A stretch of 64,000 bases of DNA from positions 166,048-230,047 of the IMG/VR virus record IMGVR_UViG_3300042516_005475; one strand, 5' to 3'. This document shows positions 1,892-46,578 of the stretch, in pieces. A model generated the notes under the pieces. That model saw nothing but the letters and a program-made list of their open reading frames with translations. It made no database searches and had not been told where the DNA came from. A program made the position numbers and the translations under genes. Numbering within the stretch: position 1 is the first letter of the stretch; each line of letters starts with the position of its first letter.

Positions 1892-3988
1892 GTGAAGTTT
1901 CAAGATTATCTCATTGAGTCCTGGAAAGATTATAAAGTAAGTAACAGCCCCAAAGTACTTTTGTACGACTTTTACTTGCTTAGTTATCTTTCCTCTCTTA
2001 TTTTAGATCCAGGTACCAGAAAAGATGTTGGTTTAACAGGTGTTGGTTATTCTGGTAAATTCTTTGGAAGAGAAGGTAAAGAGCTCGATGAAGATATTCA
2101 AAACGCACAGAGAAAGCTATTACCATTCTTAGGTAACAAGCTATCTCAGGCTTTATTTTTAGCCGTTTGCGCAGAGCTACGCCATGTATTAGATAGAAAT
2201 CAACAATGGAGTGAGTTTAAGCATACAAAGAACAAAACATTTAGAAACTATATAAGAAACTTAGAGTTCATGAATAATAAAGAACTCAAAGATTTCCAAT
2301 CTAAAAGAAACATAGAAAATCCAAGATTACAGGTTCAAAGCCAAGGTTATAAAACATCTTACCAGGCTGCAAAGAAGTCTATCAAAGAAACAGGTGGCAA
2401 TGTAATTGACTTTGCCAGAATGGCTGCAGACGCCTTTGAAGATTTAAACTGGTCAGCATCATACGGAGGAGATAAGTGGGCTGAAATTGCTAAAGGTTAT
2501 GTAGATTTGCGCCTGGCTCTCAACAATTATAATCCTGAGGCTCCCAGCCCTTCTTCTGAGTCAGCAGAAAGGTTAATTGCTGCTATTGATCATGCATTTG
2601 ATTTAGAGCACAATACTGGTACAGTATTAAACAAAGTAAAGTACTTTGATGTTAAGGGATATGATTGGATTAAGACTGCCTTGGATGATAAGAGAGATGC
2701 TAACATGTATGACATAGCCAAGAAGGCTAGTAGCGACATGAGAAAGCTAGGTCAAGAAGTGTTAAAGGTGGCTGGTATGCAGGATAAGCAGATGAAAAAA
2801 GTACCTGCAGAGGCTGGTATTCCAACAAAGAAAATAAAGCTGGCTGGGTTTACCTCGAAGAAATATGAAGGTGAACATATTAAAGATCTCAGCAGTCTTC
2901 CTATAGGTAGTCTCATAACAGATGATTATAGCGAGTATGTAGCTAAAGTTTTAAATATAAAAAATGCAGAGAAAAAGGTTACGGTTAAATTTATAGCTAT
3001 AAAAAATAAAAATGATGAAAAATGGTTAGGAAAAACTCATAGATATAGTTTTAACTATATTAAAGAAAAATTACACATAGTTAAAAAACAAGATGAGGCT
3101 AATCTCTTAAAAGATTACTTTGTAGATCCTAGTTATAAACCGGAAGTTACTAGCACTTCATCTGCCATAAAAATTGGTGACACAGTAAAAGTTAAGAATA
3201 ATAACATGGAGGGTACTGTAGAATTAATTAATAATGAGGGAGATAATGAAGCACCCTTAGTTCAAATTAAAGTAATTAAAGCTATTCACCCTGAGCTTGT
3301 AGGTATTAAAACCTGGTACCCAGCAGACCATCTTGAGAAGATATCTCCATCAAAGGTAGTTAAGCTACAAGGTTTTGGTAGTAAAAAGCCAGCAAAAAAT
3401 GAGGCATTATTATTTTCAACAGAAATTGAAAGCCCATATATGTTAACTATAGGTTCAATTCTAATTAATATCCATAGTTCTGATCTATATATTGTTCAAA
3501 TGGTTAATGGGCCTGGAAATTATATAAAGATAAAATTAGTTGCATCGAACGACGCTTTGGAGTTTCCTAATTATACTGAACCTGAATTATACAATGGTGC
3601 TACAATTGCGAGAGATTTTAGATTAATAAAAAACAAAGATAAGGAAAGAGCCTTTGCTTCATATGAGTTTATAAAATTATCTTCTGCGAGTAGAGAAGCA
3701 TCTAAGGCTGCCAAGGCAGATGAGCCAGCCCCTAGAGAAAGAGATGAAAATTTAAAAGTTGGTTTTTACTTTGTAATTAATAATGAAACAAACATTGTTC
3801 AAATAACAGCTCTTCCAAGAGGTTATGTTGAATATAAAATAGTAGCAGCTACTAAAAAATATAAAGAGTTGGAAGGTGTTTCTAGCGGTATGCCTAAAGA
3901 TATGTTCATAGATTCAATTGACTTTGCTATTAATCCTAAATCAACTGAATTTAATTACTATATTAGACAATTCAAAAATAAACGTTGA
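1892..3988 (+). CDS. large late protein, putative internal head protein; conserved N-terminal domain plus KOW/SH3-like repeats (paralog of 8767-12267)
   Basis: 698 aa; MKFQDYLIE leader; LYDFY, WSASYGGDKW, IDHAFDLEHNTG shared with 8767; IKIGDTVKVK-type repeats; TAAATA 1881-1886. Confidence 0.65.
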   Translation: MKFQDYLIESWKDYKVSNSPKVLLYDFYLLSYLSSLILDPGTRKDVGLTGVGYSGKFFGREGKELDEDIQNAQRKLLPFLGNKLSQALFLAVCAELRHVLDRNQQWSEFKHTKNKTFRNYIRNLEFMNNKELKDFQSKRNIENPRLQVQSQGYKTSYQAAKKSIKETGGNVIDFARMAADAFEDLNWSASYGGDKWAEIAKGYVDLRLALNNYNPEAPSPSSESAERLIAAIDHAFDLEHNTGTVLNKVKYFDVKGYDWIKTALDDKRDANMYDIAKKASSDMRKLGQEVLKVAGMQDKQMKKVPAEAGIPTKKIKLAGFTSKKYEGEHIKDLSSLPIGSLITDDYSEYVAKVLNIKNAEKKVTVKFIAIKNKNDEKWLGKTHRYSFNYIKEKLHIVKKQDEANLLKDYFVDPSYKPEVTSTSSAIKIGDTVKVKNNNMEGTVELINNEGDNEAPLVQIKVIKAIHPELVGIKTWYPADHLEKISPSKVVKLQGFGSKKPAKNEALLFSTEIESPYMLTIGSILINIHSSDLYIVQMVNGPGNYIKIKLVASNDALEFPNYTEPELYNGATIARDFRLIKNKDKERAFASYEFIKLSSASREASKAAKADEPAPRERDENLKVGFYFVINNETNIVQITALPRGYVEYKIVAATKKYKELEGVSSGMPKDMFIDSIDFAINPKSTEFNYYIRQFKNKR

Positions 3989-4018
3989 TTCTGCATAGAA
4001 CCCCGTTATAATACAGAA

Positions 4019-4411
4019 ATGAGCTATTATCTCTTTTTGGACGATGAACGCTTCCCTCAAGATGTCACTTGGGTGAAGCTCCCACCCCACAACTGGACCA
4101 TTGTTCGCAACTATGCTGACTTTGTGCGAACCATTGAGAACAAAGGTTTGCCTGTGGAAATTGCCTTTGATCATGACTTGGGACACGAGCATTATCAGGC
4201 CTATCATGCCGCTGCTAAGCCTGGACATGGAGTCATTGATTACAGCAGCTTCAAGGAGAAGACTGGTCTCGACTGCGCCAAGTGGCTCATTGAACATTGT
4301 AACGAGAAGAATTTGCCGTTCCCCAAGTATTATGTTCACTCCATGAACCCCATTGGCAAGCAGAATATCATCAACGCTGTCAATTCCTTCAAAAGATATT
4401 TGCAAAAGTAG
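4019..4411 (+). CDS. cyclic-phosphate-processing receiver (cREC-type REC) domain protein
   Basis: LFLDDER.P, IAFDHDLG, TGLDCAKWL, VHSMNPIG motifs of this stand-alone receiver family. Confidence 0.8.
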   Translation: MSYYLFLDDERFPQDVTWVKLPPHNWTIVRNYADFVRTIENKGLPVEIAFDHDLGHEHYQAYHAAAKPGHGVIDYSSFKEKTGLDCAKWLIEHCNEKNLPFPKYYVHSMNPIGKQNIINAVNSFKRYLQK

Positions 4412-4440
4412 TGGCGTTCCTTCAAAAAAGCAGCCATAAT
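4411..4440 (+). promoter_or_regulatory. early-type promoter driving the ncRNA cluster
   Basis: gtggcg-ttcc...-CATAAT followed by GATTGTAGAAAAT, matching promoters at 26128, 27200 and 27485. Confidence 0.65.
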
Positions 4441-4554
4441 GATTGTAGAAAATTTAGAACGGTAGTAACGTTCAACAGGTGCTGACAATACGTAGAAAAA
4501 GATAGTGTTGGCTAAGTGCGAGTTGTAGTGCCTCCAGCCTGTGTTCTTTTCAAT

Positions 4555-4873
4555 GCGATCGTAGCTCAACGGTAGAGCATCGGCCTTTAATAGGAGCGCT
4601 TATAGAGTGATCTATAAGATGAACCGAGCCATATGCGGGGACCTCCTTAGAGCCTTGAGTACCGTAAGGTAAAAATCTCAAGGATTGGACAATCCGCAGG
4701 AAACCAGTAGATTAGTACGCTGTTGGTCATAAATTGGGATCCTCAGAGACTTTACGCTTGGCATCTCTAAAAGAGATGATGATAAAGTCCAGACTACAAC
4801 GGAAACGGCTAGTGAAAACTAGAGTAGTAAGTTAAGCCGGGTGTTGTGGATTCGAATTCCACCGGTCGCACCA
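4555..4873 (+). tRNA. trnK: tRNA-Lys(UUU) interrupted by a group I intron; exons 4555-4587 and 4832-4873
   Basis: Acceptor GCGATCG/CGGTCGC, D arm GCTC/GAGC, anticodon stem TCGGC/GCCGG, spliced loop CT-TTT-AA, T arm GTGGA-TTCGAAT-TCCAC, encoded ACCA end. Confidence 0.9.
4588..4831 (+). ncRNA. group I intron, 244 nt, no ORF (IC3-like)
   Basis: P ATGCGGGGAC 4633, Q AATCCGCAGG 4691, R CCTCAGAGACTTTA 4741, S GATGATAAAGTCC 4778; P7 GACTTTA/TAAAGTC; P3 CCGAGC/GCTTGG; P1 CTT/GAG; terminal G 4831. Confidence 0.92.
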
Positions 4874-4972
4874 TATTTGCCAACAGGGCTCAGCTTGATG
4901 CTTTGGACAGATAACAAAGTCTGATAGAGAGGCTAGTGCAGAAAATCCTGTATAAACTGCACATTAATTTTT

Positions 4973-5047
4973 CGGCAAGAGTCCTGATCAGACATGGTAA
5001 AGTGCCTGCAGAGGGCACGAGGCAGGTTCAAGTCCTCCATCTTGCCG
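4973..5047 (+). ncRNA. tRNA-like structured RNA without a normal anticodon arm
   Basis: CGGCAAG/CTTGCCG stem, TGGTAAA D-loop-like segment, GTGCCT/GGGCAC hairpin, AGG-TTCAAGT-CCT T-arm. Confidence 0.6.
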
Positions 5048-5070
5048 TTCAATTTAGTTCTTTTACATTT

Positions 5071-5162
5071 GAGTTGGAGCTGTATCCGCAAGGACAGCAT
5101 GGTGTTAGTGAAAGCATTGGAAATGCAGTCTTTCACCGGACTACGACGGTTCCATCCAACTC
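5071..5162 (+). ncRNA. structured RNA with the same architecture as 4973-5047
   Basis: GAGTTGG/CCAACTC, GCAA-tetraloop hairpin, ATGG/CCAT, GTGAAAG/CTTTCAC. Confidence 0.55.
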
Positions 5163-5169
5163 TTTAAAT

Positions 5170-5311
5170 TTATCTGTAGCTCAGCGGTAAGAGCAGAGTT
5201 CCTAACTATGGGTAAAGCCCTTAAAAATCTTATGTTAGGTCGTAAAATTGCCTTGTACTGATATTTTACAAGTTGTAAAAGTAGCCGTTGGTTCGATTCC
5301 AACCAGATGAA
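5170..5311 (+). ncRNA. tRNA-like RNA with a ~90 nt structured segment replacing the anticodon/variable region
   Basis: Acceptor TTATCTG/CAGATGA, TA-GCTC-AGCGGTAA-GAGC D arm, GTTGG-TTCGATT-CCAAC T arm; middle has CCTAAC/GTTAGG and CTTGTA/TACAAG. Confidence 0.7.
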
Positions 5312-5406
5312 CAATTACGCCCGGAGAATACCCGATAAATAGGACACTTAATTTGGTTCCCCATCAGAGGATTAAAACGCCAATTAAAAGACCGGCGACA
5401 ATTTTA

Positions 5407-5539
5407 TGCCAGGAGAGCGCGAGTAATACGCCTTCAGCTAGATGTAGTAATTAGCGTCTAGCAACGAGAAGAACAAAGGAAACCGAAGTAATTACCGGCT
5501 AACCTTTTATAGGTGGATAAAGAACCACCCCTGACACCA
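5407..5539 (+). ncRNA. CCA-ending tRNA-like RNA
   Basis: TGCCAGG/CCTGACA (one mismatch) then CCA; GGTGG/CCACC hairpin in T-arm position; internal GCTAGATG/CGTCTAGC stem. Confidence 0.45.
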
Positions 5540-5566
5540 ATTTAACAAGACAGATAGACGTGTAAG

Positions 5567-5621
5567 TAAGCTTTGGAAGCCACCCATAAGTGGGTGACTG
5601 GGTTCGATTCCCAGGAGCTTA
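5567..5621 (+). ncRNA. 55-nt minimal tRNA-like element
   Basis: TAAGCTT/GAGCTTA acceptor, TGGAAG linker, CACCCA-TAAG-TGGGTG hairpin, CTGGG-TTCGATT-CCCAG T arm; inside an AACAAG/CTTGTT outer stem (5544-5678). Confidence 0.6.
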
Positions 5622-5739
5622 TTAGGGAACAAACTGCCATCTCGACGAGAGAGCGTAGGTGAAATCCTGAAACTTGTTTCAAATTTTATTTGCAGTTCCT
5701 GTTACTTTCAGTTAAACTAAACGTAGTAAAAATAAAAAA

Positions 5740-6042
5740 ATGAACAAAGAAATCGTTAACATCGTTCGGGACCGCAAGGGTAATCCTCGTGGTTATGTTG
5801 TCGCTACTAAGCTCGAGAATGGTAAGGTTGGCCTTGGCTGGTCTTATGTTAATGTTAAGGCTGGAGATCGCTTCGACAAGTATCTCGGCCAAAAGATCGC
5901 CATGAATCGAGCCTTTACTGGTACTGATAAGTTTGTGCCTCGTGACGTGATGAAGGTGATTGATCGGGTGTCTTCTCGCGCTGTGAAGTACTTCAAGGCT
6001 CCTATTGATGCCTACCCTCAGCAAGTTGTTACTGTTGCGTAA
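5740..6042 (+). CDS. hypothetical early protein
   Basis: Downstream of TTGCAG-17-TAAACT promoter; GWSYVN...DRFDK.LG.KIA. Confidence 0.65.
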   Translation: MNKEIVNIVRDRKGNPRGYVVATKLENGKVGLGWSYVNVKAGDRFDKYLGQKIAMNRAFTGTDKFVPRDVMKVIDRVSSRAVKYFKAPIDAYPQQVVTVA

Positions 6043-6057
6043 ACAATTGCTAATGTT

Positions 6058-6264
6058 ATGATTAAAATCCTTGTTGATCTCGATACTGAAGGTGACAGCT
6101 TCAGAGGTAATATGTCTGGAGAAGTCACCAAGATCTCTAGGGATATTGGTGAAATGATCTTGGAAGTAATTAGCAAAGATGCTACTTGTGTATCGCGAGA
6201 TATCATCGATGCTGGAGATAATAAAATTGGTGTAGTAACTATTACTAATCCTTGGAGGGAATAA
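6058..6264 (+). CDS. hypothetical protein
   Basis: 68 aa ORF co-oriented with neighbours. Confidence 0.55.
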   Translation: MIKILVDLDTEGDSFRGNMSGEVTKISRDIGEMILEVISKDATCVSRDIIDAGDNKIGVVTITNPWRE

Positions 6265-6286
6265 CTAAAAGGGCATAAATATCTTT

Positions 6287-7684
6287 ATGCCTGTTAACAG
6301 TAATGTAACAACTCCTAATTACCAAACTTTAGAGTATCAAAAGTTTGTCCAAATATATAATGATACTAGATTCCCTCCAATAACAAGTGTAAGATCTGAC
6401 TATTATAGCGGTACACAGATTGAGATATATGATAAGTATGCTGTATTAACTTTTGATATTGGGCAAAATGCAGCTCTAGGACCAGCTAATACGTTGCCGT
6501 TTGGAGATAATGCTGCTAGTGATGCCTTTGGTAGACTGAGAGTTTCTCTCCCATCTACCTTATTTAACTCTAAACAAAATAATGATAGTAATTCTTTACT
6601 CTATAGCACAGCAACTGTAAATACAGGTAGTTGGTATTTTGATAACAATAATGCCTGTACAGTCTTATCTGTTTCAGCAACAGGAGATGTTGCTATAAAG
6701 CAGTCAAAAAAGTATATGAATTATCAGCCTGGCAAATCCCAGCTGATATTCGAAACCTTTGTAATGCCTAACACAGCAGGCATAGTTAACAGAGTTGGTT
6801 TATTTGATAGCTCAACAACTTCTCCATATAGCAATAATATTGAGGGTTATTATTTTCAATGTAATAATGGAGTAAATTCTTTCCATATTGCTAATGTTGG
6901 TGACGAGCCAAGCCAAAGCGCTTTACAATCTGAATGGAACATAGACAAGCTTAACGGTACAGGTTTATCTGGTATAACATTAGATGTTACAAAAACCCAG
7001 ATTTTAGTAATAGATTACGAGTGGTTAGGGGTAGGGAGAGTTAGAATGGGGTTCTGTATTAATGGTATTATATTTTATTGTCATCAATTCGTTCATGCAA
7101 ATGAAGTCTCTCTTCCTTATCTCCAAGATCCAAACAAACCTATTAGATATGAAATTAGAAGCACAGGTGGAATAGGTTCATTAAAACAAATATGCGCTAG
7201 TGTTATGAGTGAAGGTGGAAGTGTTGATAACGCTATCCCGTTATCTATTGATACTGGGTTTGACAGTATTGGTAATATTTCAAGCAATACATTATGGCCA
7301 GCTATAACTGTTAGACTAAAAGATTCTTTTAAGAGTGTAGATATACAATTAAAAGACTTTGCTGCAATGGCTTTCTCAACTACTAATACTCTTGTAAGAG
7401 TAGTATCAAATGGTGTTATTTCTAATTCAGCAGCCTTTGTTGATATGAGCTCTGGGGCCTTGGAATATAGTATAGGCACTACTTCTACTACTCTTACTGG
7501 AGGTGTTATATTATTCAGCTCTTTTTTTAATAAGGCCAGCAATACTATTAGTCAATTAGGAGAGTCTTTATATAGTTTAGGTAGCAACATAAACGGCACC
7601 AAAGATACATTATCATTAGTATTAGTTCCATGTGGAGGAAATGAAAAGTATTTTGCTGCAATGAACTTCAAACAGTACCTATAA
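6287..7684 (+). CDS. putative virion structural protein (beta-rich)
   Basis: 465 aa S/T/N-rich; DAFGRLRVS, YQPGKSQL, DYEWLGVGRVRMGF; TAAATA 6276-6281. Confidence 0.6.
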   Translation: MPVNSNVTTPNYQTLEYQKFVQIYNDTRFPPITSVRSDYYSGTQIEIYDKYAVLTFDIGQNAALGPANTLPFGDNAASDAFGRLRVSLPSTLFNSKQNNDSNSLLYSTATVNTGSWYFDNNNACTVLSVSATGDVAIKQSKKYMNYQPGKSQLIFETFVMPNTAGIVNRVGLFDSSTTSPYSNNIEGYYFQCNNGVNSFHIANVGDEPSQSALQSEWNIDKLNGTGLSGITLDVTKTQILVIDYEWLGVGRVRMGFCINGIIFYCHQFVHANEVSLPYLQDPNKPIRYEIRSTGGIGSLKQICASVMSEGGSVDNAIPLSIDTGFDSIGNISSNTLWPAITVRLKDSFKSVDIQLKDFAAMAFSTTNTLVRVVSNGVISNSAAFVDMSSGALEYSIGTTSTTLTGGVILFSSFFNKASNTISQLGESLYSLGSNINGTKDTLSLVLVPCGGNEKYFAAMNFKQYL

Positions 7685-7729
7685 TTTAGTTGCCTTTCCT
7701 GTTCAGGTAAATTATACTGTAGGAAGAAT

Positions 7730-8746
7730 ATGGAACGTAAACTTGCTAGTGTTCGTAAGATTCAAGAAATTAAGCTCATCGAAGGTGCTGACAAGATTTG
7801 CGCCTACCGAGTTGATGGTTGGTGGGTTGTAGATAGTATTAATAAGTATAATGTTGGTGATCTTGTGGTCTACTACGAGATTGATAGCTTTCTACCAATC
7901 ACTCCTCAATTTGAGTTTCTCCGCAAGTCTTCATTCAAGAAGATGGGTGAACGTGAAGGCTTTAGGCTCAAGACTATTAAGCTCAAGGGCCAGCTCAGCC
8001 AAGGTCTCTTGACTAAAATTCCAATTGGTCTCATTGTACCTCCTAAGGAAAATGATGACATGACTGAGTTGCTCGGCATTATCAAGTATGAGCCTCCTAT
8101 TCCTGCTGAGCTAGCTGGTGAGATCAAGGGTTCGTTCCCTAGCTTCATCCCTAAGACTGATGAGGTTCGTATTCAGAACTTTGAAAGGGAAGTTGGGGTT
8201 TCTATCGCTAATGAGCGAGTTTACGCTACTGAGAAGGTTGATGGTACTAGCTTTACTTGTTATGTTAACAATGGTGAGTTTGGTGTTTGTGGTCGCAATT
8301 GGGAGTTGAAGGAGACTCAAGGTAACTCTCTTTGGCGAATGGCTAACAAGCTCAATCTTCGTGAGAAGCTCTTGAGTCTCAATCTTAACATTGCCTTGCA
8401 GGGTGAGTTGTTTGGTAGTGGAATTAATGGTAATTGGTACAAGCTCAATGATCACCGACTCATGTTCTTTACTGGATATGATATTGATAATCAAAAGCGA
8501 TTGCAGTTTAATGAGTTAATGAACTTGTTGGATAGTTTGCAGTTGGAAAGTGTTCCTGTTATTGATTATATTGCTACTATTCCAGATGGTACTATGGCTG
8601 AGATCGTTGAGTGGTCTTTGTTGTATGCTGAGTCTGAGAGTAATATTAATGCTGCTGTAGAGAACGAAGGTGTTGTTATTCGTGGTCTTGAGAAGGAGTT
8701 TAGCTTCAAGGCTATTAGTAACAAGTGGCTCCTTAGTGAAAAGTAA
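7730..8746 (+). CDS. RNA ligase (DRB0094/Rnl5-like, N-terminal OB domain)
   Basis: MERKLAS...IEGADKI OB domain; FIPKTDEVRIQN; TEKVDGTS; LQGELFG; EGVVIR; SFKAISNKWLL. Confidence 0.88.
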   Translation: MERKLASVRKIQEIKLIEGADKICAYRVDGWWVVDSINKYNVGDLVVYYEIDSFLPITPQFEFLRKSSFKKMGEREGFRLKTIKLKGQLSQGLLTKIPIGLIVPPKENDDMTELLGIIKYEPPIPAELAGEIKGSFPSFIPKTDEVRIQNFEREVGVSIANERVYATEKVDGTSFTCYVNNGEFGVCGRNWELKETQGNSLWRMANKLNLREKLLSLNLNIALQGELFGSGINGNWYKLNDHRLMFFTGYDIDNQKRLQFNELMNLLDSLQLESVPVIDYIATIPDGTMAEIVEWSLLYAESESNINAAVENEGVVIRGLEKEFSFKAISNKWLLSEK

Positions 8747-8766
8747 GGAGAGTTAATAAATATTCA

Positions 8767-11700
8767 GTGATGACACTGAGCAATTTCTTAACCGAGGCAG
8801 CAGTAAATTACAAGATTGGTAGTGGTAACCCAGAGAAGATGCTCTATGACTTTTATGTCTTGAGCTTCATCTCTACCATTAACTTAACACCTGAGAAGGC
8901 CAAGACTGGAACCTTTGGAGATCTTGGATTCCAGGGTGGGTTTCTCGGTAAATCTGATAGAGTCAAGGAGGACATTGAGTACGCTCAAGATGTCCTCCTT
9001 CCTGTGTTAAAAGAGAAGCTAGTAAAAGGTTTGTTTGTATCTATCTGTGCTGAAATCAGACACATAAAAGATAGACCACAAAGCTATAAAGACACACCAT
9101 TAGCAACATCCAAGGTATTCAGAGACTACTATCGCAATTATACTTTAATAGATAAAAGTTTACCAAAAGAGTTTGAGATAAAGAGATTAAGAGAGCCTAA
9201 AAGCGCTATTCCAAAGTCTGAAGCTTACAAGAGATCCTATCAGGCGGCAACAAAGGCTATTAAAGACACAAATTCTACTCCATATGAGTTTGTTCAGATG
9301 TGTGAATATGCCTTTAAGAACATGTCATGGGCTGCTAGTTACGGTGGTAAGAACTGGGCTGCTATTTGCGCTGGGTACAGATTGTTAGTAGATTCTAAGT
9401 CAAAGGATCAGGTATCTGTAGCTATTGACCATGCATATGACCTTGAGCATAACACAGGTGCGGCTCTTAACAAGGTAAAGGATTTCTACATTACTGATAA
9501 AAATGGTAGAGAAGACTTTGATTGGATGGGCAAAGCATTGGATCTCAAGCGCGACGCTAAGTCCATGAACAAGCTCATTGACAAGTGTAGCGGTGATATG
9601 AAGAGATTAGCCTTGCAGGCTATGGCCTTATCTCCAATTGACTACATGAAGAAGAAGACTCCAGCTCCAGAGACTGTGATGCAGCAAACAGCATCTAAAG
9701 TAGGTGGAGAGTACTTAAATGCCTTTAATGAAGGAGCACCTAAGAAGTATAGAACAAAAGAAACTAAAAAGGAAGAGAAGGCTGATTTAAGTGAAGTAAA
9801 GGTAGTTCCAGGCCCTAAGCATGGATTAACAGCAGTAACCAAATATCAAGAAGATAATGTTTATTATGATGAGTATTTAAAAACCTATGTGTATGTTGTT
9901 AAGAAAGTGCCAGAAACAAAATCTGGAATAATTGTAAAATTAGCTGCTATAACAAAAGAAACCCCTAAAGAGATTTTAAAGAAGCAAATTGATCTACACA
10001 ACAAAGGAAATAATACTTATGTTAGTATCGACATGAACTTATTAAATTTAAGTCCAACAGATTTAGCTAACTTTTTTAATGAGGAAATACCAGTAACATC
10101 AAACGTAACAAAATTTAAATTAGCTCCTGCGCCTAAAGACTCTTCACATGCTCCTTACATTTTTCAAAAAAACAAATATTATTATGATAGTTTTTTAAAT
10201 GTTTATGTAGAGTTTATTAAACCAGACCCTGATTCTAAACTTGGAATAATTGTTTCTTTAGTAGCAGTTACTCCAAATTCTGCTATTTCTCTACTTCAAA
10301 ATAAAATTAAGGCCTATAATAAAGAACATGCTTATTTGAATACCTATGTCGCTGCGGAAAACGACCTTATGGGAGTTAGCCCAAAGGATGAAGAATCCTT
10401 AAAAGCTGCTGTATCTGGTAAGACTCCAATTAAATCACCAGAAGATCAATACGAAAGAGAGGAAAAGCAGTCAAAAGAGTATATTAGCAAGCTAGTACCT
10501 AATGCTCCTATGCCTATCACTGGTAGTAAGGTTAATAAGTTTAGTGATGATAAAATTTATTATGACAGCAAGACAAAGGCTTATGTAAAATATAAACATA
10601 AGAGTGGCTGGACAGATCCTAAAATAATGGAATTGTATGCAACAACATATTTTTCGGATACAGCTTTATTAAAAAGAAAAATTGAACTGTTTAAAAAGGA
10701 ATTTGGTCAAAATAAACAATATGTAGCTGCAATAAAAGATATTATTGAGATTGATGAATCTGATACAAACAAAGTAAAACAAGTAGTAGATGGAGAGAAG
10801 TCTGAGGTTAAGAAGCCTAATTTAGATGTATATTTCGCAAAGTATAAATTTGGTGATAAGGTCTTTTTAGATGTTAAAAAATCTGTATCTGGTCAAGTAA
10901 TAGAGAACTTTTTTGAAGATAATGATGAGTATTACAAAATTAAAGTAATTGATAATGCATCATATACTGGCGCTAGTTCTCCTTATGGAATAGGTAAAAT
11001 CTTTACAAAAACTGCAAAGTATATAGATGACTTAAACCCAAAATACAAAGTAACTGACAGAGTAATTTTAATACAATCCGGTAGTGAAGGTATTATTGTT
11101 CAGACCCCATTCAAGCAAGACGCTACATCTAATTATCTTATTAAGATTACAAAAGCAGGAGAGTCAAATGCCTTTAAAAAAGGAGAAGAAATTGTAGTTA
11201 ATACCAGCCGTATCGCCCCTTTGAAGAGGGAGAATGCTAGCGCAAGAACTAATGCTATTAAGAAGCAGAGTGCTCCAGGTAATATACCGTCAGAGGCCTG
11301 GGATAAAATGAGCGAAAAAGTAAAGAACATCTTTGCTCCATATAAGAAAAACAAAAACACTTCTTATGTTTATTATACTGAGAAAGGAGGCAGACAATTA
11401 GGTTTGTATGGTGTAATTGAAAAATTTTACTACAGTCAGGTTGGCGGTACAGAATTACTTACAGTAGAATTTAGATATTTTGTTTCTGCTGCATCTCAAG
11501 CTTCTTTTACAACAATATCTGAGAATAATTTTAATAAACTACAAGATTACAAATCTGCTTTAGAAAGTGTAAATGATTCACCTCTTTACAATGCTCCTTC
11601 TCAAAACTTAGATTCTGCATTAATGCTAAAAGACTATCAAACTGATATTAATGGAGAGGTATTTTATCATATACCAGCTCAGCAATATGTAAAGGTTAAG

Positions 11701-12267
11701 TCAAAAGGGGCTGGAATTCATACAGGTATATACTTTTCAGTTGTTCCAGTAGCAAAGACTAAATTCACCCCAGCTTATTATACATTTAACTGGGCAGAAA
11801 TAACAGCAACAACTAAAGATTTGCAAGAATTATCTATCAAGGCAATAGAATATTTGAAAAAACACTCTGGTGATATTGTTAAAGAGTTAATGCCAAAAGA
11901 AAACCCAGATGAAGTTAAAACACCTGGAAAAGTAAAGCCTGTTGAGATGAATGCATATGAAAAGGAAATACCTGTTCATTATATAAAGAATGAAGACTTC
12001 TTAGAATTAATTGATGCTCAGGCACTATCTTCTCAGTCTGAAATCAGAAGAGATCAATTTTATTATGATGTTACAACAAAGTTAGTAGTAAGTCCAATAA
12101 CTTCTAAAAAGCAATTTGGTGATGCTAGTAAGACTTTAGATGTAGCACCATATGAAAAGATTTTAATTAACTATTCAGGAGAGAAAACACCTAGAGGAGA
12201 GAAAATTATAGTACCTAAAACAATGTCTGTGTATGTGACTGATTTGCATAAAATCCTAGATTATTAG
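8767..12267 (+). CDS. very large late protein, paralog of 1892-3988, putative internal head protein
   Basis: 1166 aa; MTLSNFLTE leader; LYDFY, WAASYGGKNW, IDHAYDLEHNTG; repeated YYDxxxxxYV and YKxGDxV modules; TAAATA 8757-8762. Confidence 0.65.
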   Translation: MMTLSNFLTEAAVNYKIGSGNPEKMLYDFYVLSFISTINLTPEKAKTGTFGDLGFQGGFLGKSDRVKEDIEYAQDVLLPVLKEKLVKGLFVSICAEIRHIKDRPQSYKDTPLATSKVFRDYYRNYTLIDKSLPKEFEIKRLREPKSAIPKSEAYKRSYQAATKAIKDTNSTPYEFVQMCEYAFKNMSWAASYGGKNWAAICAGYRLLVDSKSKDQVSVAIDHAYDLEHNTGAALNKVKDFYITDKNGREDFDWMGKALDLKRDAKSMNKLIDKCSGDMKRLALQAMALSPIDYMKKKTPAPETVMQQTASKVGGEYLNAFNEGAPKKYRTKETKKEEKADLSEVKVVPGPKHGLTAVTKYQEDNVYYDEYLKTYVYVVKKVPETKSGIIVKLAAITKETPKEILKKQIDLHNKGNNTYVSIDMNLLNLSPTDLANFFNEEIPVTSNVTKFKLAPAPKDSSHAPYIFQKNKYYYDSFLNVYVEFIKPDPDSKLGIIVSLVAVTPNSAISLLQNKIKAYNKEHAYLNTYVAAENDLMGVSPKDEESLKAAVSGKTPIKSPEDQYEREEKQSKEYISKLVPNAPMPITGSKVNKFSDDKIYYDSKTKAYVKYKHKSGWTDPKIMELYATTYFSDTALLKRKIELFKKEFGQNKQYVAAIKDIIEIDESDTNKVKQVVDGEKSEVKKPNLDVYFAKYKFGDKVFLDVKKSVSGQVIENFFEDNDEYYKIKVIDNASYTGASSPYGIGKIFTKTAKYIDDLNPKYKVTDRVILIQSGSEGIIVQTPFKQDATSNYLIKITKAGESNAFKKGEEIVVNTSRIAPLKRENASARTNAIKKQSAPGNIPSEAWDKMSEKVKNIFAPYKKNKNTSYVYYTEKGGRQLGLYGVIEKFYYSQVGGTELLTVEFRYFVSAASQASFTTISENNFNKLQDYKSALESVNDSPLYNAPSQNLDSALMLKDYQTDINGEVFYHIPAQQYVKVKSKGAGIHTGIYFSVVPVAKTKFTPAYYTFNWAEITATTKDLQELSIKAIEYLKKHSGDIVKELMPKENPDEVKTPGKVKPVEMNAYEKEIPVHYIKNEDFLELIDAQALSSQSEIRRDQFYYDVTTKLVVSPITSKKQFGDASKTLDVAPYEKILINYSGEKTPRGEKIIVPKTMSVYVTDLHKILDY

Positions 12268-13407: not shown

Positions 13408-13839
13408 ATGTTCAAAAATAAAGGGTTTACAATATTAGAGATACTCTTAACAGTAGCCCTTTTAGCAACATTAATTGGTGTAGTGTCCTTTAACTTCAAT
13501 AGTTTATCAGATTCTGCTCAATACAAAGAAGCCAAAGAGAATCTAAAGACTCACTTAATAAGTCAGAAGTATAAGGCTGCTTATGAGCAGAAGGAGATTG
13601 AAGTTGATCTGAGTGTGGCAACAAATGATCTTAACATAGTAGATGCCACTAAGATAGTATTCTTCTCTGATGGTTCAGTTGAAGAGAGCTATATAATAGT
13701 AAGCTCTTTAGATGGTAAATATACTAACAAGATAGTAATTAATGTTATAGGTTATGTATCAGAGCAAGATACTTTCGATATTCTACCTATTGAGTCTAAA
13801 GACAGGTTACCGATAGAAAATTATGAAGAGTCTTTTTAA
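13408..13839 (+). CDS. type IV pilin/pseudopilin-like protein
   Basis: KNKG|FTILEILLTVALLATLIGVV: prepilin cleavage site, F+1, E+5, hydrophobic helix. Confidence 0.8.
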   Translation: MFKNKGFTILEILLTVALLATLIGVVSFNFNSLSDSAQYKEAKENLKTHLISQKYKAAYEQKEIEVDLSVATNDLNIVDATKIVFFSDGSVEESYIIVSSLDGKYTNKIVINVIGYVSEQDTFDILPIESKDRLPIENYEESF

Positions 13840-15372: not shown

Positions 15373-15960
15373 ATGATTGATGATGTTTTAACAAGAAGCT
15401 CTTATAAAAACATTTGCCTACAGCAAAGAGAAGAGGTTAAAAACGTGTTCCCTGTATTGTTAAATAACATACTACCAAATAGAATTATTGAAGTAGGTAC
15501 TGGACATGGTGGTTTAACATTGTTCTTAAGGGATAATTTACCATCAACCTCAGATGTTTATTCTTTTGATATTGTTGAAAGTGTTTATCATAAAGATTTA
15601 AGAGATAATAAAATTAATATTTTTAATGGAAATATTTTTGAAGAAAAAACAGATTGGAATGAATTTATTTTAAAACAAGAATGGGAGCATTTATTTAACG
15701 TTAGCCCCAAAATTGTTATATGTGATGGAGGTTTCAAGCGAGGAGAGTTTAATGGTTTAGCAAAATATTTAAATATTGGGGATATTATAATGCTGCATGA
15801 TTATAGTACTGATAGAGAGTCTTTTGAAAAGTTAAACGTTTGGAATTGGTTAGAGTGTCAATATTCAGAAATTAAAAAAAGCTGTGAAACTTATAACCTA
15901 ATACCTTACATGCACGAAGAATTTCTAAATGTAGCGTGGGGATGTTTTCAAAAAAAATAA
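15373..15960 (+). CDS. class I SAM-dependent methyltransferase (CmcI-like)
   Basis: IIEVGTGHGG, YSFDI, ICDGG, GDIIMLHD; exact TATAAATA at 15359-15366. Confidence 0.75.
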   Translation: MIDDVLTRSSYKNICLQQREEVKNVFPVLLNNILPNRIIEVGTGHGGLTLFLRDNLPSTSDVYSFDIVESVYHKDLRDNKINIFNGNIFEEKTDWNEFILKQEWEHLFNVSPKIVICDGGFKRGEFNGLAKYLNIGDIIMLHDYSTDRESFEKLNVWNWLECQYSEIKKSCETYNLIPYMHEEFLNVAWGCFQKK

Positions 15961-15961
15961 T

Positions 15962-16579
15962 ATGTCTTTACAATTAATAAAAAAACACATTACCCCTCTT
16001 TCAATTCTTGATATTGGAGCTAATCACGGCCAATTTTATTGTGAAGCAAGAAAGATTTTTCCAGATAGTTATTTTTATTTAATAGAGGGTAACCCATACT
16101 GCGAACCTGCTCTTAAAGGTTTTGAGATAGATTACACTATAGCTCTCTTAAGTGATAAAGAAAAAGAAGTAGATTTTTTTATAAGAAATGGAGAAACAAG
16201 TTGTACAGGAAATTCTATTTATAAAGAAGATTCTGATTTTTATAAAGAGGGAAGCTACTTTAAAAAACAACTTTTCACTAAAACTTTAGACTCTGTATTA
16301 CAAGAGAAAAGATTCGACTTAATAAAATTAGATGTACAAGGATCAGAATTAGATATAATAAGAGGTGGTTTAGATATAGTTAAAGCAGCAAAAGCCTTGC
16401 TTTTAGAGGTAGCAGTAACCGATTTTAACATAGGTGCACCTAAAAAAGAAGAAGTTTTTCAATACCTCGCTTCTATTGGTTTTGAGCCAGTAGAAAAAAT
16501 AGCTGATTTAAACCATCCTATTTTGCATACTTTAGTACAGCAGGATTTTTTATTCTTAAATAAATCATATGATAAATAA
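15962..16579 (+). CDS. FkbM-family methyltransferase
   Basis: ILDIGANHGQF, LIEGNP, FDLIKLDVQGSELDII, LLLEV. Confidence 0.9.
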   Translation: MSLQLIKKHITPLSILDIGANHGQFYCEARKIFPDSYFYLIEGNPYCEPALKGFEIDYTIALLSDKEKEVDFFIRNGETSCTGNSIYKEDSDFYKEGSYFKKQLFTKTLDSVLQEKRFDLIKLDVQGSELDIIRGGLDIVKAAKALLLEVAVTDFNIGAPKKEEVFQYLASIGFEPVEKIADLNHPILHTLVQQDFLFLNKSYDK

Positions 16580-17255
16580 TATTTCTATTGTAAGTGTTCT
16601 TTTCGACTATCCTGAGCACTATTACCCTACTTTTTATAATAACGCTAAAAAGTACTTTCCGCTGGAAAATATTCATGTTGCGAGATACTCAAAGCTAATG
16701 GAGTTTATTTGTTATTACGATAAGCTTTATTTTTATAAAATTGAAAAACTTCTAGAATATGTAAAAGATAACATAAAAACAGAATATATGTTATTTTTAG
16801 ATGCTACAGATACAAATTTTTTAAAAGACCCATCAAATTTAGAAACAGATTTTAAAAACTATAACTGTTCAATTTTATTTTGTGCAGAAAGGGGCTTGTG
16901 GCCACCTACAGATTATAATCACTTATATAGTAATAAGAGAGTAATTTCAGAAAAGAAATATTTAAACTCTGGAGCTTATTTTGGGTATACAAAAAAAATT
17001 ATTGAGTGTTTGGAAGAGATAATTCAAGACCCTAGAGCTCATAAAGATGATCAAGCAAAATGGGCTATACAATATTTACACAAAGAAGATATAGTAATAG
17101 ATCAAGAATGTAATATTTTCTTTAGTTCTTATTTAAACAAGAACGATGTAATTTTTCATGACACCCACCCTAGTTTAAATAATTTAAATGCTTATATTGT
17201 TCATGATAACGGCGGTTATACTGAAGATACTTTAAAATTGGTACCTTTCTTTTAA
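16569..17255 (+). CDS. GT-A glycosyltransferase resembling the PLOD (lysyl hydroxylase) GT domain
   Basis: LFLDATD, ILFCAERGLWP, YLNSGAYFGY, DDQ, IDQECNIF, HDNG. Confidence 0.7.
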   Translation: MINNISIVSVLFDYPEHYYPTFYNNAKKYFPLENIHVARYSKLMEFICYYDKLYFYKIEKLLEYVKDNIKTEYMLFLDATDTNFLKDPSNLETDFKNYNCSILFCAERGLWPPTDYNHLYSNKRVISEKKYLNSGAYFGYTKKIIECLEEIIQDPRAHKDDQAKWAIQYLHKEDIVIDQECNIFFSSYLNKNDVIFHDTHPSLNNLNAYIVHDNGGYTEDTLKLVPFF

Positions 17256-17258
17256 ATT

Positions 17259-18242
17259 ATGAAAACAATTAGAATTACTCGGCAAGGCTTCCCAAATCAT
17301 GGTCAACACAGCTGGCCATCCTACTTTAAATTTATTTTATCAAAAAAGTATAATGTTATTTTAGATCCTATAAACCCTGATATAATTATTCAAACGGATC
17401 TATGTAATGATAGTACAAAAGTAGATTCCTATACTAATCATTTACCTACTTATTTTAATGCTTCTGACAAAAATAAGAAATTTATTTACATCTCAGGAGA
17501 AGCTGCTGATTTTCATAGTGGTTTAATTAATAACGATAACTGTTGGTCTTTAGGCTATCAAAAATTTTCTCACCCTCGTTATTTAAGACAACCTTCCTGT
17601 GTACTTGATGTTTGGACCCTTTTTGATGAGGCTAGGGTTGTAGACTCTCCTTTGAATTGGCTGACTCAAAAGAGAAATTTTGAGCAAATTTCCAAGAGAA
17701 ATAATAAATTTTGCTGTATAACTCAATCAAGTAATGTTGAATATAGAGGCAAAGTATTCGATAAACTTACTGAATATAAAACTGTAGACTCCTCAGGACC
17801 TTGGAGACAAAACCTATCAGGTAACGAAACTCTTAATAAGTACCAATGGATTAACCCTATTTATACAGGCAGAATGGATGGTTTAACATACAGAGAAAAA
17901 ATAGAGTTCTTTAAAAAATACAAATTTAATATTGCAATACATTTAACTAACACTGATTATATTGTTCAAGAAAAAATATACCATTCATTTTTTAGTGGTT
18001 GTATACCAATATTTTTTGGTAATAAATACATTCTTGAAGAGGGTTTTAACCCAGATAGTTTTATAAATTTACATGATTACTCTGATTTAAATTCTTTTCT
18101 AGAGCTTGTAAAAAATATAGACAACGATCAGAATCTATATAAAAAGTATATTGAATCTCCAATTTTTATAAATAATAAGTTACCAGAGTATTTTGACTTT
18201 GATTACACATTATCATTTTTAGAAAAAATTATAGAAGCCTAA
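17259..18242 (+). CDS. GT10-like (alpha-1,3-fucosyltransferase-type) glycosyltransferase
   Basis: KFCCI...SN, YKTVDSSG, KYKFNIAI, DYIVQEKIYHSFFSGCIPIFFG. Confidence 0.75.
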   Translation: MKTIRITRQGFPNHGQHSWPSYFKFILSKKYNVILDPINPDIIIQTDLCNDSTKVDSYTNHLPTYFNASDKNKKFIYISGEAADFHSGLINNDNCWSLGYQKFSHPRYLRQPSCVLDVWTLFDEARVVDSPLNWLTQKRNFEQISKRNNKFCCITQSSNVEYRGKVFDKLTEYKTVDSSGPWRQNLSGNETLNKYQWINPIYTGRMDGLTYREKIEFFKKYKFNIAIHLTNTDYIVQEKIYHSFFSGCIPIFFGNKYILEEGFNPDSFINLHDYSDLNSFLELVKNIDNDQNLYKKYIESPIFINNKLPEYFDFDYTLSFLEKIIEA

Positions 18243-30468: not shown

Positions 30469-31706
30469 ATGTTCAACGAATTAGCTAACTCTCTTATTCA
30501 AGAGAGTTTCCACCCAATCAGAGCTAAAGAGCGTATAAAAAAGTTAATTGAGACCCCTCAAGGAGCATTCCAATATGCTTTAAAAATTAAAAAAGGTAGA
30601 GCACCAGAAGTTGAGCCTATTATTTTAAAAAAAGCCTCTACAGCTATTCAATATGCTGCATTTATTATTAAAGGTAGATGGCCAGAGGCAGAGCCAATAA
30701 TATTAAAAAATGCTGCTACAGCTTACAATTATGCGCTTAATGTAATAGACGGTAGATGGCCAGAAGCTGAGCAAGTAATATTACAAAGCAATAATGCTTC
30801 TATCGCGTCATCTTATGCTGCGTTTGTAATAAATGGTAGATGGCCAGAGGCTGAACCAATAATTAAAGATAATCCTAGCGCTTCTCTCTCCTACGCAAAA
30901 TATTTACTAAAGGAAAGATTCCCAGCTGGAGAAAAAGCAATAAAAGAGAGCCCCGCACATGCAAAAGACTATGCTATTTTTGTTCTAAGAGATAGATGGC
31001 CTGAAGCTGAGCCTACTATTAAAAAGGATGAAGAACAATGGGAAAGTTATAAAGATTACTTTGGAATAGAGGAAGAAGATTAATATGCCATTAAAACCTA
31101 TTAATACTAAACCTAGAATAGATAAACTAAAGAAATGGCCTTATCATGCATATTATATTGCTAAAGATATTAAAAAAGGCAGATGGCCAGAAGCTGAACC
31201 TTATATCAAAAACGATGCCAGATGGGCATATTTCTATGCCAGAGACATCATCAAAGGCAGATGGCCAGAGGCTGATTCTGTGATCATGAATTCCAGATGG
31301 GCTGTAGCATACCTCACCATTATTTAATATGCCACTAAAACCTCTTAAAACTAAAGAAAGATTAAATGCTAAGATAGCTGAGATAAAATCATTACAACAT
31401 CGTTATAGTGCTGCTTCGGTCGCTAGAATGTCTTTTGAATTAGCTAATGGTATTGAAATACGCATACCAGAACTAGAACCCTTTATATTTAAAGATCATT
31501 GGGCTGCATATGAATATGTTAGATCAGTAGTAAAGAAACCTTTGCCAGAAGCTGAACCAATCATTCTAGATGACCCATGGACTGCCTTTTATTATGCTGT
31601 TAAAATTAAAAAAGAGAGATGGCCAGCAGCAGAACAAGTACTAAAAAACAACCAGTTAGAAGGTTTTTGGAACAAATATAAAGAAAAATTCAATATTAAA
31701 GACTAA
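30469..31706 (+). CDS. three tandem WPEAEP helical-repeat genes (30469-31083, 31085-31327, 31329-31706)
   Basis: ~24 aa unit A..YA..VIKGRWPEAEP.I; TAA-T-ATG junctions; TAAATA 30458-30463. Confidence 0.75.
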
Positions 31707-45750: not shown

Positions 45751-46578
45751 TTAAACATCTACACCTAATATCTTTAGGTACTTTTCTGTATCTGCTTTGC
45801 TCATTTTTTTATCATCAGCATCAAAGCCTTCTCTAATAACACCATCTGGGCTATCAGATTCAGGATCAGTTCCTGGAGCAATGTCTACTAATACAGCACA
45901 AGACTGTACGTTCCTCTTTGGAAATGCCTGTTGTAGTTCCTGTAGCTTTTGTTCACTCTTAGGTTTAGCAAAGTAGAAGGTAATCAATTGATTTTCAAAG
46001 TAATCCTTCCAGTGATCATCATTCTTATAGGTGATGCACCAGGCACAATCCTTCTTGCCATCCTTGCCTGTTCGGTGAGCAAATTCACTCAGGCCTAACT
46101 TACGAGCAGCGCTGTGATTCAATGGAGCAACTACTAAGGCATCATTGTTATCCAAGTAGACTTCCACTTCACCTTCTGATTGAGATCTGCTTGGATTAGC
46201 TTTTACTTGTTGATTAGCCTGTGTTACCTTTTTCTGAAGATCCTCATATGTTGGATACTTCTCAATATTAGAGTCTTCACCAGCAATAGAGCCGCTATTA
46301 ACCATGGCAATGAACTCAGTAACAGCATTTCTCAATTGATCCCAATCAAATGGAGCATTAGGTTCTTTTGTTTTGAGATATTGACGGCCAATCCATCCAA
46401 CGAACTTCTTTGTTGGTGTATTATCAGACTGAAGAATCTGATTGAATTCTTCTTGGTCTATCTTTTTACCGGCTAGCATTTGCTTGAGCTGAGCCTTGTT
46501 TTCATTGACCAAAATATTTGAACGGTTGTGATTAACGTACCCTTCAAACATTAAGCTATTAATTGATTGATTCTTCAT
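45751..46578 (-). CDS. hypothetical late protein with WC-motif domain, putative internal head protein
   Basis: IEKYPTYEDL, LVVAPLNHSAARKLG, WCITY...HW..Y. Confidence 0.55.
   Translation of the reverse strand: MKNQSINSLMFEGYVNHNRSNILVNENKAQLKQMLAGKKIDQEEFNQILQSDNTPTKKFVGWIGRQYLKTKEPNAPFDWDQLRNAVTEFIAMVNSGSIAGEDSNIEKYPTYEDLQKKVTQANQQVKANPSRSQSEGEVEVYLDNNDALVVAPLNHSAARKLGLSEFAHRTGKDGKKDCAWCITYKNDDHWKDYFENQLITFYFAKPKSEQKLQELQQAFPKRNVQSCAVLVDIAPGTDPESDSPDGVIREGFDADDKKMSKADTEKYLKILGVDV

Follow-up and report, generated by a model that had tools for sequence, protein, structure and literature searches.

Two large paralogs with an all-alpha N-terminal domain as predicted head cargo of an uncultured T4-like phage

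Two paralogs, their shared domain and their tails

The window analyzed here, 64,000 nucleotides long, is the final 64 kb of IMG/VR record IMGVR_UViG_3300042516_005475, a 230,047-bp genome (complete according to CheckV) of a T4-like myovirus with a G+C content of ~36%. No close cultured phage was found, as a megablast search of the region against 50,697 phage records gave no match. Two genes in the window encode large paralogous proteins, P0001 and P0002, which carry the only two copies in this genome of an N-terminal domain referred to below as DOM. By analogy with phage T4, we propose that both may be cargo proteins that are loaded into the phage head by a short leader peptide. The parts of the two proteins are as follows, with coordinates given for the window unless the genome is named.

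1892..3988 (+): P0001, 698 aa, composed of leader, DOM and a 398-aa basic tail; open reading frame (ORF) with a translation free of stops, pI 9.1
1892..1918 (+): leader of P0001, (V/M)KFQDYLIE, with L-I-E at its end and Ser next; predicted to act as a capsid targeting sequence and as a site for the prohead protease, from the family pattern and T4 analogy
1919..2791 (+): DOM of P0001 (residues ~10-300), from BLASTP against P0002, family alignments and a profile match over residues 2-302 (E 2.3e-90)
2792..3985 (+): tail of P0001 (residues 301-698), unrelated to the P0002 tail
8767..12267 (+): P0002, 1166 aa, composed of leader, DOM and an 866-aa tail; ORF with a translation free of stops
8770..8796 (+): leader of P0002, MTLSNFLTE, with L-T-E at its end and Ala next; predicted role and grounds as for P0001
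8797..9666 (+): DOM of P0002, all-alpha in an AlphaFold2 model
9859..10788 (+): three repeated modules of ~80-90 aa with beta3-alpha-beta2 order, P0002 residues 365-436, 471-550 and 586-674 ("YYD...YV" repeats), from model secondary structure
10858..11226 (+): two candidate SH3/KOW-like small beta-barrels, residues 698-756 and 759-820, from the model, the second at low confidence
11290..12255 (+): three further beta-rich C-terminal modules in the model, residues 842-935, 965-1041 and 1065-1163

The start of P0002 is probably ATG 8770 rather than GTG 8767, because homologues begin with MTLSNF. P0001 is identical to a metagenomic cluster representative found on 10 contigs. BLASTP aligned the two proteins with 122 identities in 312 positions (39%, E 2e-63), and the similarity spans only residues ~3-306 in P0001 and 4-300 in P0002. 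The original prediction of two large paralogs with a common N-terminal domain of ~290 aa is thus borne out, the domain measuring ~295 aa, and the shared motifs it listed are all present in both proteins, where they coincide with the best-conserved columns of the family alignments: LYDFY.LS, CAE(L/I)RH, W.ASYGG..WA, IDHA(F/Y)DLEHNTG..LNKVK and K(C/A)S.DM.(K/R)L. Over 338 unique DOM copies, E96, G193, W197, D221, H228, N229, K236 and W253 are each conserved at 100% when rounded, followed by D28 and F29 (98%), K261 (97%), D225 (96%), H222 (95%), H99 (93%) and R98 (89%). From their conservation these residues look like a possible active or ligand-binding site. The AlphaFold2 model of the P0002 domain (mean predicted local distance difference test score, pLDDT, 80.6; predicted template-modelling score, pTM, 0.79) has helices at residues 22-35, 59-101, 116-129, 152-167, 172-185, 195-209, 213-230, 252-263 and 276-288. 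The CAEIRH motif ends a helix of 43 residues, IDHAYDLEHNT lies within helix 213-230, and the Gly-Gly loop (G193-G194) precedes a helix.

DOM belongs to a large family. A word-index search returned 124 relatives; all are metagenomic, unnamed and 386-1184 aa long, with conserved N-terminal domains and differing tails. A profile search of 1.84 billion cluster representatives returned 1809 proteins at E up to 1e-3, counted as clusters at 50% identity, 386 of them at E up to 1e-30. The domain is N-terminal in 231 of 254 members, stands alone in 10 (340 aa or less) and is internal to larger proteins in 13; some of the larger proteins carry two or three copies. Scans of IMG/VR and metagenomes gave 134 loci, which fall into 77 lineages at 55% identity; L-numbers below denote these loci or lineages, and neighbourhood counts were taken over the 77. 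Paralogs are found in tandem arrays of five (L038), six (L049, with a seventh, L062, on the same contig), three (L060) and two (L025 and L017). Family members reach 4153 aa, the proteins of L030 and L031 being 3450 and 4153 aa long, and there is also a "mini" relative of ~200 aa that retains only the YxFY, W and D...HNT elements.

Searches for a known relative of DOM gave little. Scans of P0001 and P0002 against Pfam and NCBIfam assigned the domain to no family, and 52 diverse copies searched against Pfam at E up to 10 revealed no recurring family; single matches to RtcB and Cas6_N (E 0.04-0.18) did not recur among the 52 copies and were considered noise. The only library family matched was PHROG 20946, of unknown function, at residues ~166-266 (E 1.6e-9 and 2.7e-7), a partial match covering 74-80 of 336 profile positions. 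Searches of PDB sequences with one DOM sequence and two profiles found nothing, and tblastn of DOM against phage records found two records only. The family appears to be undescribed in the open-access papers that were searched.

Structural comparison, which the original prediction had named as its own check, gave a confident model and no match to a solved fold. Foldseek of the DOM model against PDB gave a best E of 0.41 with template-modelling (TM) scores below 0.2; exhaustive VIA alignment against 48,161 PDB chains reached a best Z of 5.4, to generic helical bundles; the ESM Atlas gave TM scores of at most 0.27, and an ESM-feature search no usable match. BFVD returned four unnamed viral proteins only, which are probably DOM family members themselves. 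Comparison with all-alpha enzyme and metalloenzyme folds (HD, ferritin-like and haem-oxygenase-like di-iron, ADP-ribosylglycohydrolase, Fic, lysozyme-like, HEPN and MazG) found no match. A haem-oxygenase-like di-iron site (ExxH ... DxxxDxxH), suggested by motif spacing and a phmmer match to HemO at E 0.35, failed in the fold searches, as did an HD reading and a lysozyme or endolysin reading based on the SH3 repeats, and a Fic-like motif (H.F.D..N.G) differs in register, with the fold unmatched. Nor did the domain match a known structural protein devoid of a catalytic pocket, the outcome that had been named as contradicting an enzyme. For a P-loop polynucleotide kinase of the T4 Pnk type, no Pfam match was obtained in P0001 or P0002, and GxxxxGK[ST] was not seen by eye in the alignments, no pattern search having been run; with Walker A and AAA_33 absent, DOM would, if it is a kinase, lie outside the T4 Pnk family.

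The tails measure 398 and 866 aa, in keeping with the ~400 and ~870 aa of unrelated sequence noted originally, and show no similarity to each other (best BLASTP E about 7). Among homologues with DOM 70-99% identical, tails differ in length, whole proteins ranging from 446 to 883 aa. The further claim that the tails are SH3/KOW-like held in part. Neither tail has a significant Pfam match, the only hit being MSSS SH3 in P0001 (residues 428-446, E 0.037), below the cut-off. Tails of relatives match KOW, SPT5-KOW4, SH3_15, KIN17-SH3, ProQ_C-like, Tudor-like DUF4537 and the MscS beta-domain, and the AlphaFold model of the P0002 tail, of moderate confidence (pLDDT 68), finds its best PDB matches in multi-KOW SPT5 (E 1.4e-4) and also matches tandem Tudor, SAWADEE and Agenet domains (Foldseek probability 0.9 or more for Tudor and SAWADEE), the matches spanning the tail. 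The beta3-alpha-beta2 modules differ from plain SH3 and resemble PUR repeats only weakly (probability 0.16-0.18). Internal repeats went undetected in BLASTP self-comparison of the tails and are evident by eye and in the model. At the level of modelled fold, SH3/KOW-like modules seems a fair description, and such KOW/Tudor-like tails fit the proposal of multiple binding modules.

A leader shared by unrelated proteins of the same phages

In the P0002 model, residues 1-11 are unstructured (pLDDT below 50) and are not packed on the fold. An [LIVMF]xE motif lies ~17 residues ahead of the LYDFY block in 173 of 192 N-terminal DOM copies, with Leu at P3 in 60%, Ile in 18% (L/I 78%) and Phe in 11%. The distance from Met to Glu is mostly 8-14 residues (mode 10), and the Glu is usually followed by S, K, A, I or G. 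The capsid targeting sequence (CTS) of T4 is the 10-residue MKTYQEFIAE, and the prohead protease gp21 cuts after L/I-X-E (PMC8442874, PMC9026906). The internal proteins of T-even phages have nothing in common except this leader (PMC3012670), and the CTS has been suggested to be a general device of T4-like phages (PMC9026906).

In other DOM lineages, unrelated proteins of one phage begin alike. In L003 (8387-15960) and L005 (10001-19749), 7-8 consecutive genes begin with MKYTDYY.(H/Y)L..E or a close variant; they encode DOM, proteins of 188/219, 351, 797/946, 186, 120 and 67/88 aa, an amidoligase and a Nudix protein, and the block looks like a gene cluster for leader-tagged head cargo. MNF(R/K)(D/E)(H/Y)Y opens the six DOM paralogs of L049 plus three other proteins, ERIL(E/D)L(S/A)G..LNE followed by S is common to DOM and two neighbours in L064, and in L011 the DOM leader (MKRILLKDLLFE) matches that of a lysozyme-like neighbour (MHIIKLKDLLYE). 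Scored as at least 6 of 11 leader residues identical, over 48 lineage representatives, 15 non-DOM ORFs in 9 lineages share their leader with the DOM protein of their own locus, compared with a mean of 0.47 and a maximum of 4 in 200 permutations with leaders swapped from other lineages. Such sharing of one phage-specific leader among unrelated proteins of a single phage suggests CTS-like loading, and we regard it as the decisive point for the proposal.

The matching protease is encoded as well. The head module (genome 1-6076, -) runs from the major capsid gene gp23 through a gp22-like protein rich in (L/I)xE to a prohead protease of family S77, the gp21 type (genome 2272-2841, -, in a gene at 2215-2889; 38% identity, E 1e-32), which adjoins the other two genes; a 603-aa ORF at genome 4265-6076 may be the portal. 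The gp23 gene is split between the record ends (window 63419-64000, -, and genome 1-1089, -) with ~35 profile positions duplicated, a sign that the assembly is circularly permuted and that its ends overlap slightly. Of five other DOM contigs tested, three have an S77 protease, and the two lacking a match are only 51% and 82% complete.

From these leaders, the protease and the T4 precedent we infer the following course of events. The leader of ~9 residues (MKFQDYLIE or MTLSNFLTE) would act like the T4 CTS and draw the protein into the prohead core; the S77 protease would remove it by cutting behind the last residue of (L/I)-x-E; and the mature protein would remain in the DNA-filled head and enter the host with the genome. 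DOM, all-alpha and of unrecognized fold, would be the working part, an effector with phosphoryl-related chemistry, and the fast-changing array of KOW/Tudor/SH3-like barrels would aim it at a nucleic acid or at a host transcription or translation protein. We give this account, built on analogy, about an even chance of being correct. The original suggestion that the domain is "delivered" fits it on a different ground, namely the T4-CTS-like leader common to unrelated proteins of the same phages.

CTS-directed internal proteins are already known in T4, where IPI, IPII, IPIII and Alt offer the closest comparison: a short N-terminal leader with aromatic residues that ends in (L/I)-x-Glu and is common to unrelated proteins of one phage, a gp21/S77 protease in the same phage, and diverse, fast-evolving cargo. 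An ADP-ribosyltransferase (ART) domain like that of Alt is even fused to DOM in some relatives. However, DOM has no sequence or fold relation to the T4 proteins, the DOM proteins greatly exceed them in size (700-1170 aa in this phage, up to 4153 aa in others), and the predicted cargo has one conserved enzyme-like domain in up to six paralogs per phage, with packaging predicted here. What would be new is a very large, unnamed cargo family with a new fold, together with leader "regulons" in uncultured T4-like phages. It has also been inferred in print that myoviruses package ART, Macro and Nudix enzymes (PMC9503650). The polyvalent and MuF-fused effectors (PMC9503650) resemble the DOM proteins in predicted co-delivery with DNA and in enzymatic modules set in variable architectures, and polyvalent proteins may have a counterpart in the giant DOM proteins (1900-4150 aa) that include an ART or a HAD phosphatase domain. 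In P0001 and P0002, by contrast, one domain is conserved and binding repeats make up the rest; loading is predicted to depend on a cleavable CTS-like leader and not on fusion to MuF or the portal, and DOM is not among the polyvalent-protein domains of Pfam.

Several other proteins bear leaders of this kind. In the window these are an Amidoligase_2 protein (47996-49360, -; MKFKDLYNSLLQE followed by G), a 204-aa protein (30469-31083, +; MFNELANSLIQE followed by S) and a 275-aa protein (45751-46578, -; MKNQSINSLMFE followed by G). The amidoligase homologue in the distant phage L005 bears that phage's own leader, MNYKDHYKHLTNE followed by S. Outside the window, leaders of the same type occur at genome 55723-56058 (+; MKYDILVQQLLTE followed by A), 111801-112544 (+; MNFLNHYLIQE followed by S), 124460-124882 (-; MTFDQLCKSLLEE followed by A) and 149225-149875 (-; MRFQDLCLIYE followed by G). 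Three of these four ORFs require an alternative internal start codon, and from their leaders all four are candidates for small internal head proteins. In L144 (228-1067), a kinase-like protein with a P-loop (GLPAAGKT) begins with MKFKQFYLNE, matching the adjacent DOM leader MKFKTFYLLNE, and is a further candidate for a packaged enzyme.

Fusions, gene neighbours and competing explanations

One hint at chemistry comes from L071 (8003-10351) and L068 (8282-10624), where DOM follows the ATP-grasp and phospho-histidine swivel domains of pyruvate phosphate dikinase (PPDK; the dikinase part matches residues 2-516 of PDB 1kbl, E 1e-119) in place of the phosphoenolpyruvate (PEP)/pyruvate substrate barrel. 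With respect to PPDK and PEP synthase, DOM thus stands exactly at the position of the phosphoryl-acceptor substrate domain. In contrast to PPDK, it is all-alpha and not a TIM barrel, and P0001 and P0002 have neither an ATP-grasp nor a swivel domain, none being encoded in the genome. Other members are fused to an Alt/VIP2-type ART domain in proteins of 1300-3200 aa (P0216, and weakly P0209), to a HAD phosphatase (DxDxT; with DOM in the L045-type giants, with mini-DOM in L037) or, in one case, to a 2H domain. In the Vibrio phages PJ32 (L007, 21-4075) and VH2_2019 (L073) an operon has the order ppdK, an additional gene, a tyrosine/dual-specificity phosphatase and a DOM-like gene; these are siphophages of ~80 kb, and the operon adjoins DNA polymerase I. 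In 8 of 77 lineages, a dual-specificity phosphatase (DSP)-type gene lies no more than 0.5 kb from DOM.

The invariant polar residues and the dikinase-fusion position point to a catalytic or ligand-binding pocket for a phosphoryl group. DOM may therefore bind a phosphoryl acceptor, or carry out phosphoryl-transfer or phosphoester chemistry on a nucleotide or a nucleic-acid (RNA) end, and on grounds of context phosphoryl-acceptor binding or transfer is the most likely chemistry. An enzyme-like domain, as originally suggested, is likewise supported by invariant E96, D221, H228, N229 and K236 and by the dikinase substrate-domain slot in two fusions.

In L037, L044, L045 and L069, the gene order is DUF6267, a large gene, DOM, S77 protease, a gene at the gp22 position and gp23, which places DOM where the prohead core genes lie in T4; in L034, DOM lies between the portal and protease genes. 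DUF6267, a frequent upstream neighbour, was considered as a portal and rejected, its cyanomyovirus homologues being labelled "hypothetical". Within 2.5 kb of DOM, gp23 is found in 9 of 77 lineages and S77 in 6, a moderate enrichment given that many loci are short.

A number of observations weigh against head cargo with phosphoryl chemistry. Packaging and cleavage rest on the T4 analogy, and the phosphoryl-transfer proposal is guilt by association, with a ligase link in 2 lineages and a dikinase link in 3; the window's genome itself has neither a dikinase nor a DSP phosphatase, and DOM has no recognized nucleotide-binding motif. An S77 gene within 10 kb in 13 of 77 lineages is only modestly above chance for genomes of 35-230 kb. 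Of 33 internal DOM copies, 22 likewise have an (L/I)xE motif ahead of them, so it may be partly a structural feature of the domain. The window's own genome lends support to shared leaders, with the leader pattern on 8 ORFs, compared with 1.4 +/- 1.2 in shuffles, 0 of 300 shuffles reaching 8, but this statistic is inflated because the pattern was written after the matches had been viewed; the between-lineage permutation test is free of this flaw. Among the 8 are both paralogs, the amidoligase and small proteins from other parts of the genome, and a stricter pattern, run earlier, also selects the ORF at 30469-31083. The T4-type late promoter TATAAATA shows no enrichment and does not occur upstream of the P0001 or P0002 gene; scans for sigma-70 promoters and terminators were uninformative. 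Both genes lie 55-62 kb away from the head module, as the ip and alt genes of T4 are likewise distant from theirs.

Among the alternatives, one in which nothing is packaged draws on the genes between the paralogs.

4019..4411 (+): cREC (cyclic-phosphate-processing receiver) protein, Pfam PF20274, E 2.8e-23
4556..5621 (+): RNA cluster with an intron-bearing tRNA-like gene, a tRNA match with an insert and a tRNA-like element, from Rfam and sequence reading
7730..8746 (+): ATP-dependent RNA ligase (PHA02142 OB fold and RNA_ligase), Pfam E 9e-33 and 1.2e-22, PHROG 968

DOM could be an end-healing activity, for example a non-P-loop polynucleotide 5'-kinase, that acts in the cytoplasm with cREC, which opens 2',3'-cyclic phosphates, and the RNA ligase to repair tRNAs that host anticodon nucleases have cleaved; the tails would bind tRNA or the ribosome. 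The arrangement noted originally, in which the paralogs flank an RNA cluster and a ligase, is indeed found, with cREC, the intron (4577-4812), the tRNA match (5170-5311) and the ligase between them and 21 nt from the end of the ligase to P0002. A second, distant lineage (L046) has an operon of RNA ligase, phosphatase, DOM and DOM, only the phosphatase gene separating ligase and DOM; its ligase shares 29% identity with the one in the window. In L028, L035 and L051, a CCA-adding/poly(A)-polymerase-HD gene neighbours DOM in divergent orientation, within 2.5 kb in two of the three. The DOM-HAD, DOM-2H and dikinase-DOM fusions mimic the kinase-phosphatase, kinase-cyclic phosphodiesterase and phosphodonor-acceptor layouts of known repair enzymes, and the window's genome has no match to an AAA_33/PNK-type kinase, yet an ATP-dependent ligase requires a 5'-phosphate; the cREC-ligase linkage and the kinase requirement have been described in jumbo phages (PMC7824862). 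Across the 77 lineages, however, only 2 have a ligase next to DOM and 1 has cREC there, ligase and cREC are themselves without a leader, and RNA repair leaves unexplained the leader common to Nudix, amidoligase and other proteins, the position beside the prohead protease and the arrays of 5-6 paralogs. We consider this explanation unlikely; packaging and a role in RNA repair can coexist.

The leader, the protease motif and the gene position would also suit non-enzymatic head-core or internal structural proteins, like T4 gp67/gp68 or the inner-body paralogs of phiKZ type, in which DOM binds scaffold or DNA and its conserved residues serve assembly. DOM genes between portal-side genes and the prohead protease stand in the place of gp67/gp68, the proteins are mildly basic (pI ~9), and no catalytic fold has been recognized. 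Paralog numbers are variable, as in giant-phage head families: in phiKZ and SPN3US, families of head paralogs vary widely in copy number between related phages and are processed after Glu (PMC5694885, PMC9026906), which DOM arrays of up to six copies with variable tails resemble. The protein families are different ones, though (PF12699 was unmatched), as are the phage lineage and the protease family, S80. Invariant E, D, H, N and K residues and a Gly-Gly loop kept in 338 divergent copies would be unusual for a purely structural helical domain, and an assembly role makes little sense where a leaderless DOM ends dikinase-like enzymes or shares a siphophage operon with a phosphatase. This explanation is in our view quite unlikely.

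A receptor-binding, tail-fibre-like protein, anchored by its conserved N-terminus and binding through variable C-terminal modules, or a cell-wall hydrolase whose SH3b-type repeats bind the wall, is very improbable: the conserved N-terminus, hypervariable C-terminus and tandem paralogs are the classic host-range pattern and SH3-like repeats are common in endolysins, but the confident model matches no lysozyme-like, transglycosylase or fibre fold, no PHROG or Pfam family for tail, lysis or fibre was matched, the neighbours are head rather than baseplate genes, the tail modules are closer to KOW/Tudor (nucleic-acid or protein binding) than to SH3b, and DOM is fused to the cytoplasmic enzyme domains dikinase, HAD, ART and 2H.

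The proposal of leader-loaded head cargo can be extended to a more specific function, which we put forward as speculation that is quite unlikely as a whole. DOM might be a phosphotransferase or phosphoryl acceptor with a new fold, such as a non-P-loop polynucleotide 5'-kinase or a nucleotide-signal enzyme, preloaded in the head by a CTS-type leader with Nudix, amidoligase and other proteins and injected with the DNA to counter RNA- or nucleotide-based defences before phage genes are expressed, with KOW/Tudor arrays retargeting the paralogs. If the leader is a true CTS, the injected arsenals of uncultured T4-like phages could be read from sequence through the shared N-terminal leader; the list assembled here is headed by DOM, which, with its 1809 clusters, would be among the commonest injected cargo domains of environmental phages, and also holds Nudix, amidoligase and P-loop proteins. 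This would offer an entry point to early, pre-transcriptional host takeover or counter-defence. The leaders would form a natural set for loading foreign proteins into capsids of non-coli T4-like phages, e.g. MKFQDYLIES or MKYTDYYSHLNEG, and the dikinase-DOM fusions are a testable handle on DOM chemistry.

Genes between and around the paralogs

From P0001 to P0002, the gene order is cREC, the RNA cluster, two small ORFs, a homologue of a virion protein and the RNA ligase. Within the cluster, an apparent tRNA gene at 4556-4873 (+; GCGATCGTAGCTCAACGGTAGAGCA ... GGATTCGAATTCCACCGGTCGCACCA) has its anticodon loop split by a group I intron (4577-4812; Rfam RF00028, 70.9 bits). A tRNA covariance-model match at 5170-5311 (+; 36.4 bits) has an insert of 86 nt in place of the anticodon arm, and a separate tRNA-like acceptor/T-arm element lies at 5567-5621 (+), with weak matches to mascRNA and the tmRNA end. 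ARAGORN reported zero tRNAs across the whole window.

The virion-protein homologue (6287-7684, +; 465 aa) shares 33-36% identity across ~85% of its length, and 38-39% in shorter matches, with a T4-like cyanophage protein labelled "virion structural protein". In the cyanophages it is encoded between the terminase genes gp16 and gp17, and a homologue is also present in Puniceispirillum phage HMO-2011; the copy in the window is inside the RNA-repair-like cluster.

Further along, the protein encoded at 13408-13839 (+) has an N-terminal methylation motif like that of type IV pilins (PF07963, E 1.4e-4). At 1-432 and 15373-18242 (+), genes for methyltransferases of the FkbM type and similar to FtsJ, and for a protein resembling GT10 fucosyltransferases, suggest a cluster for modification of glycans or nucleic acids. 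ThyX is encoded at 456-1130, 0.8 kb ahead of P0001, and ThyX and DOM are 0.9-1.7 kb apart in a second lineage (L035, L036 and L118).

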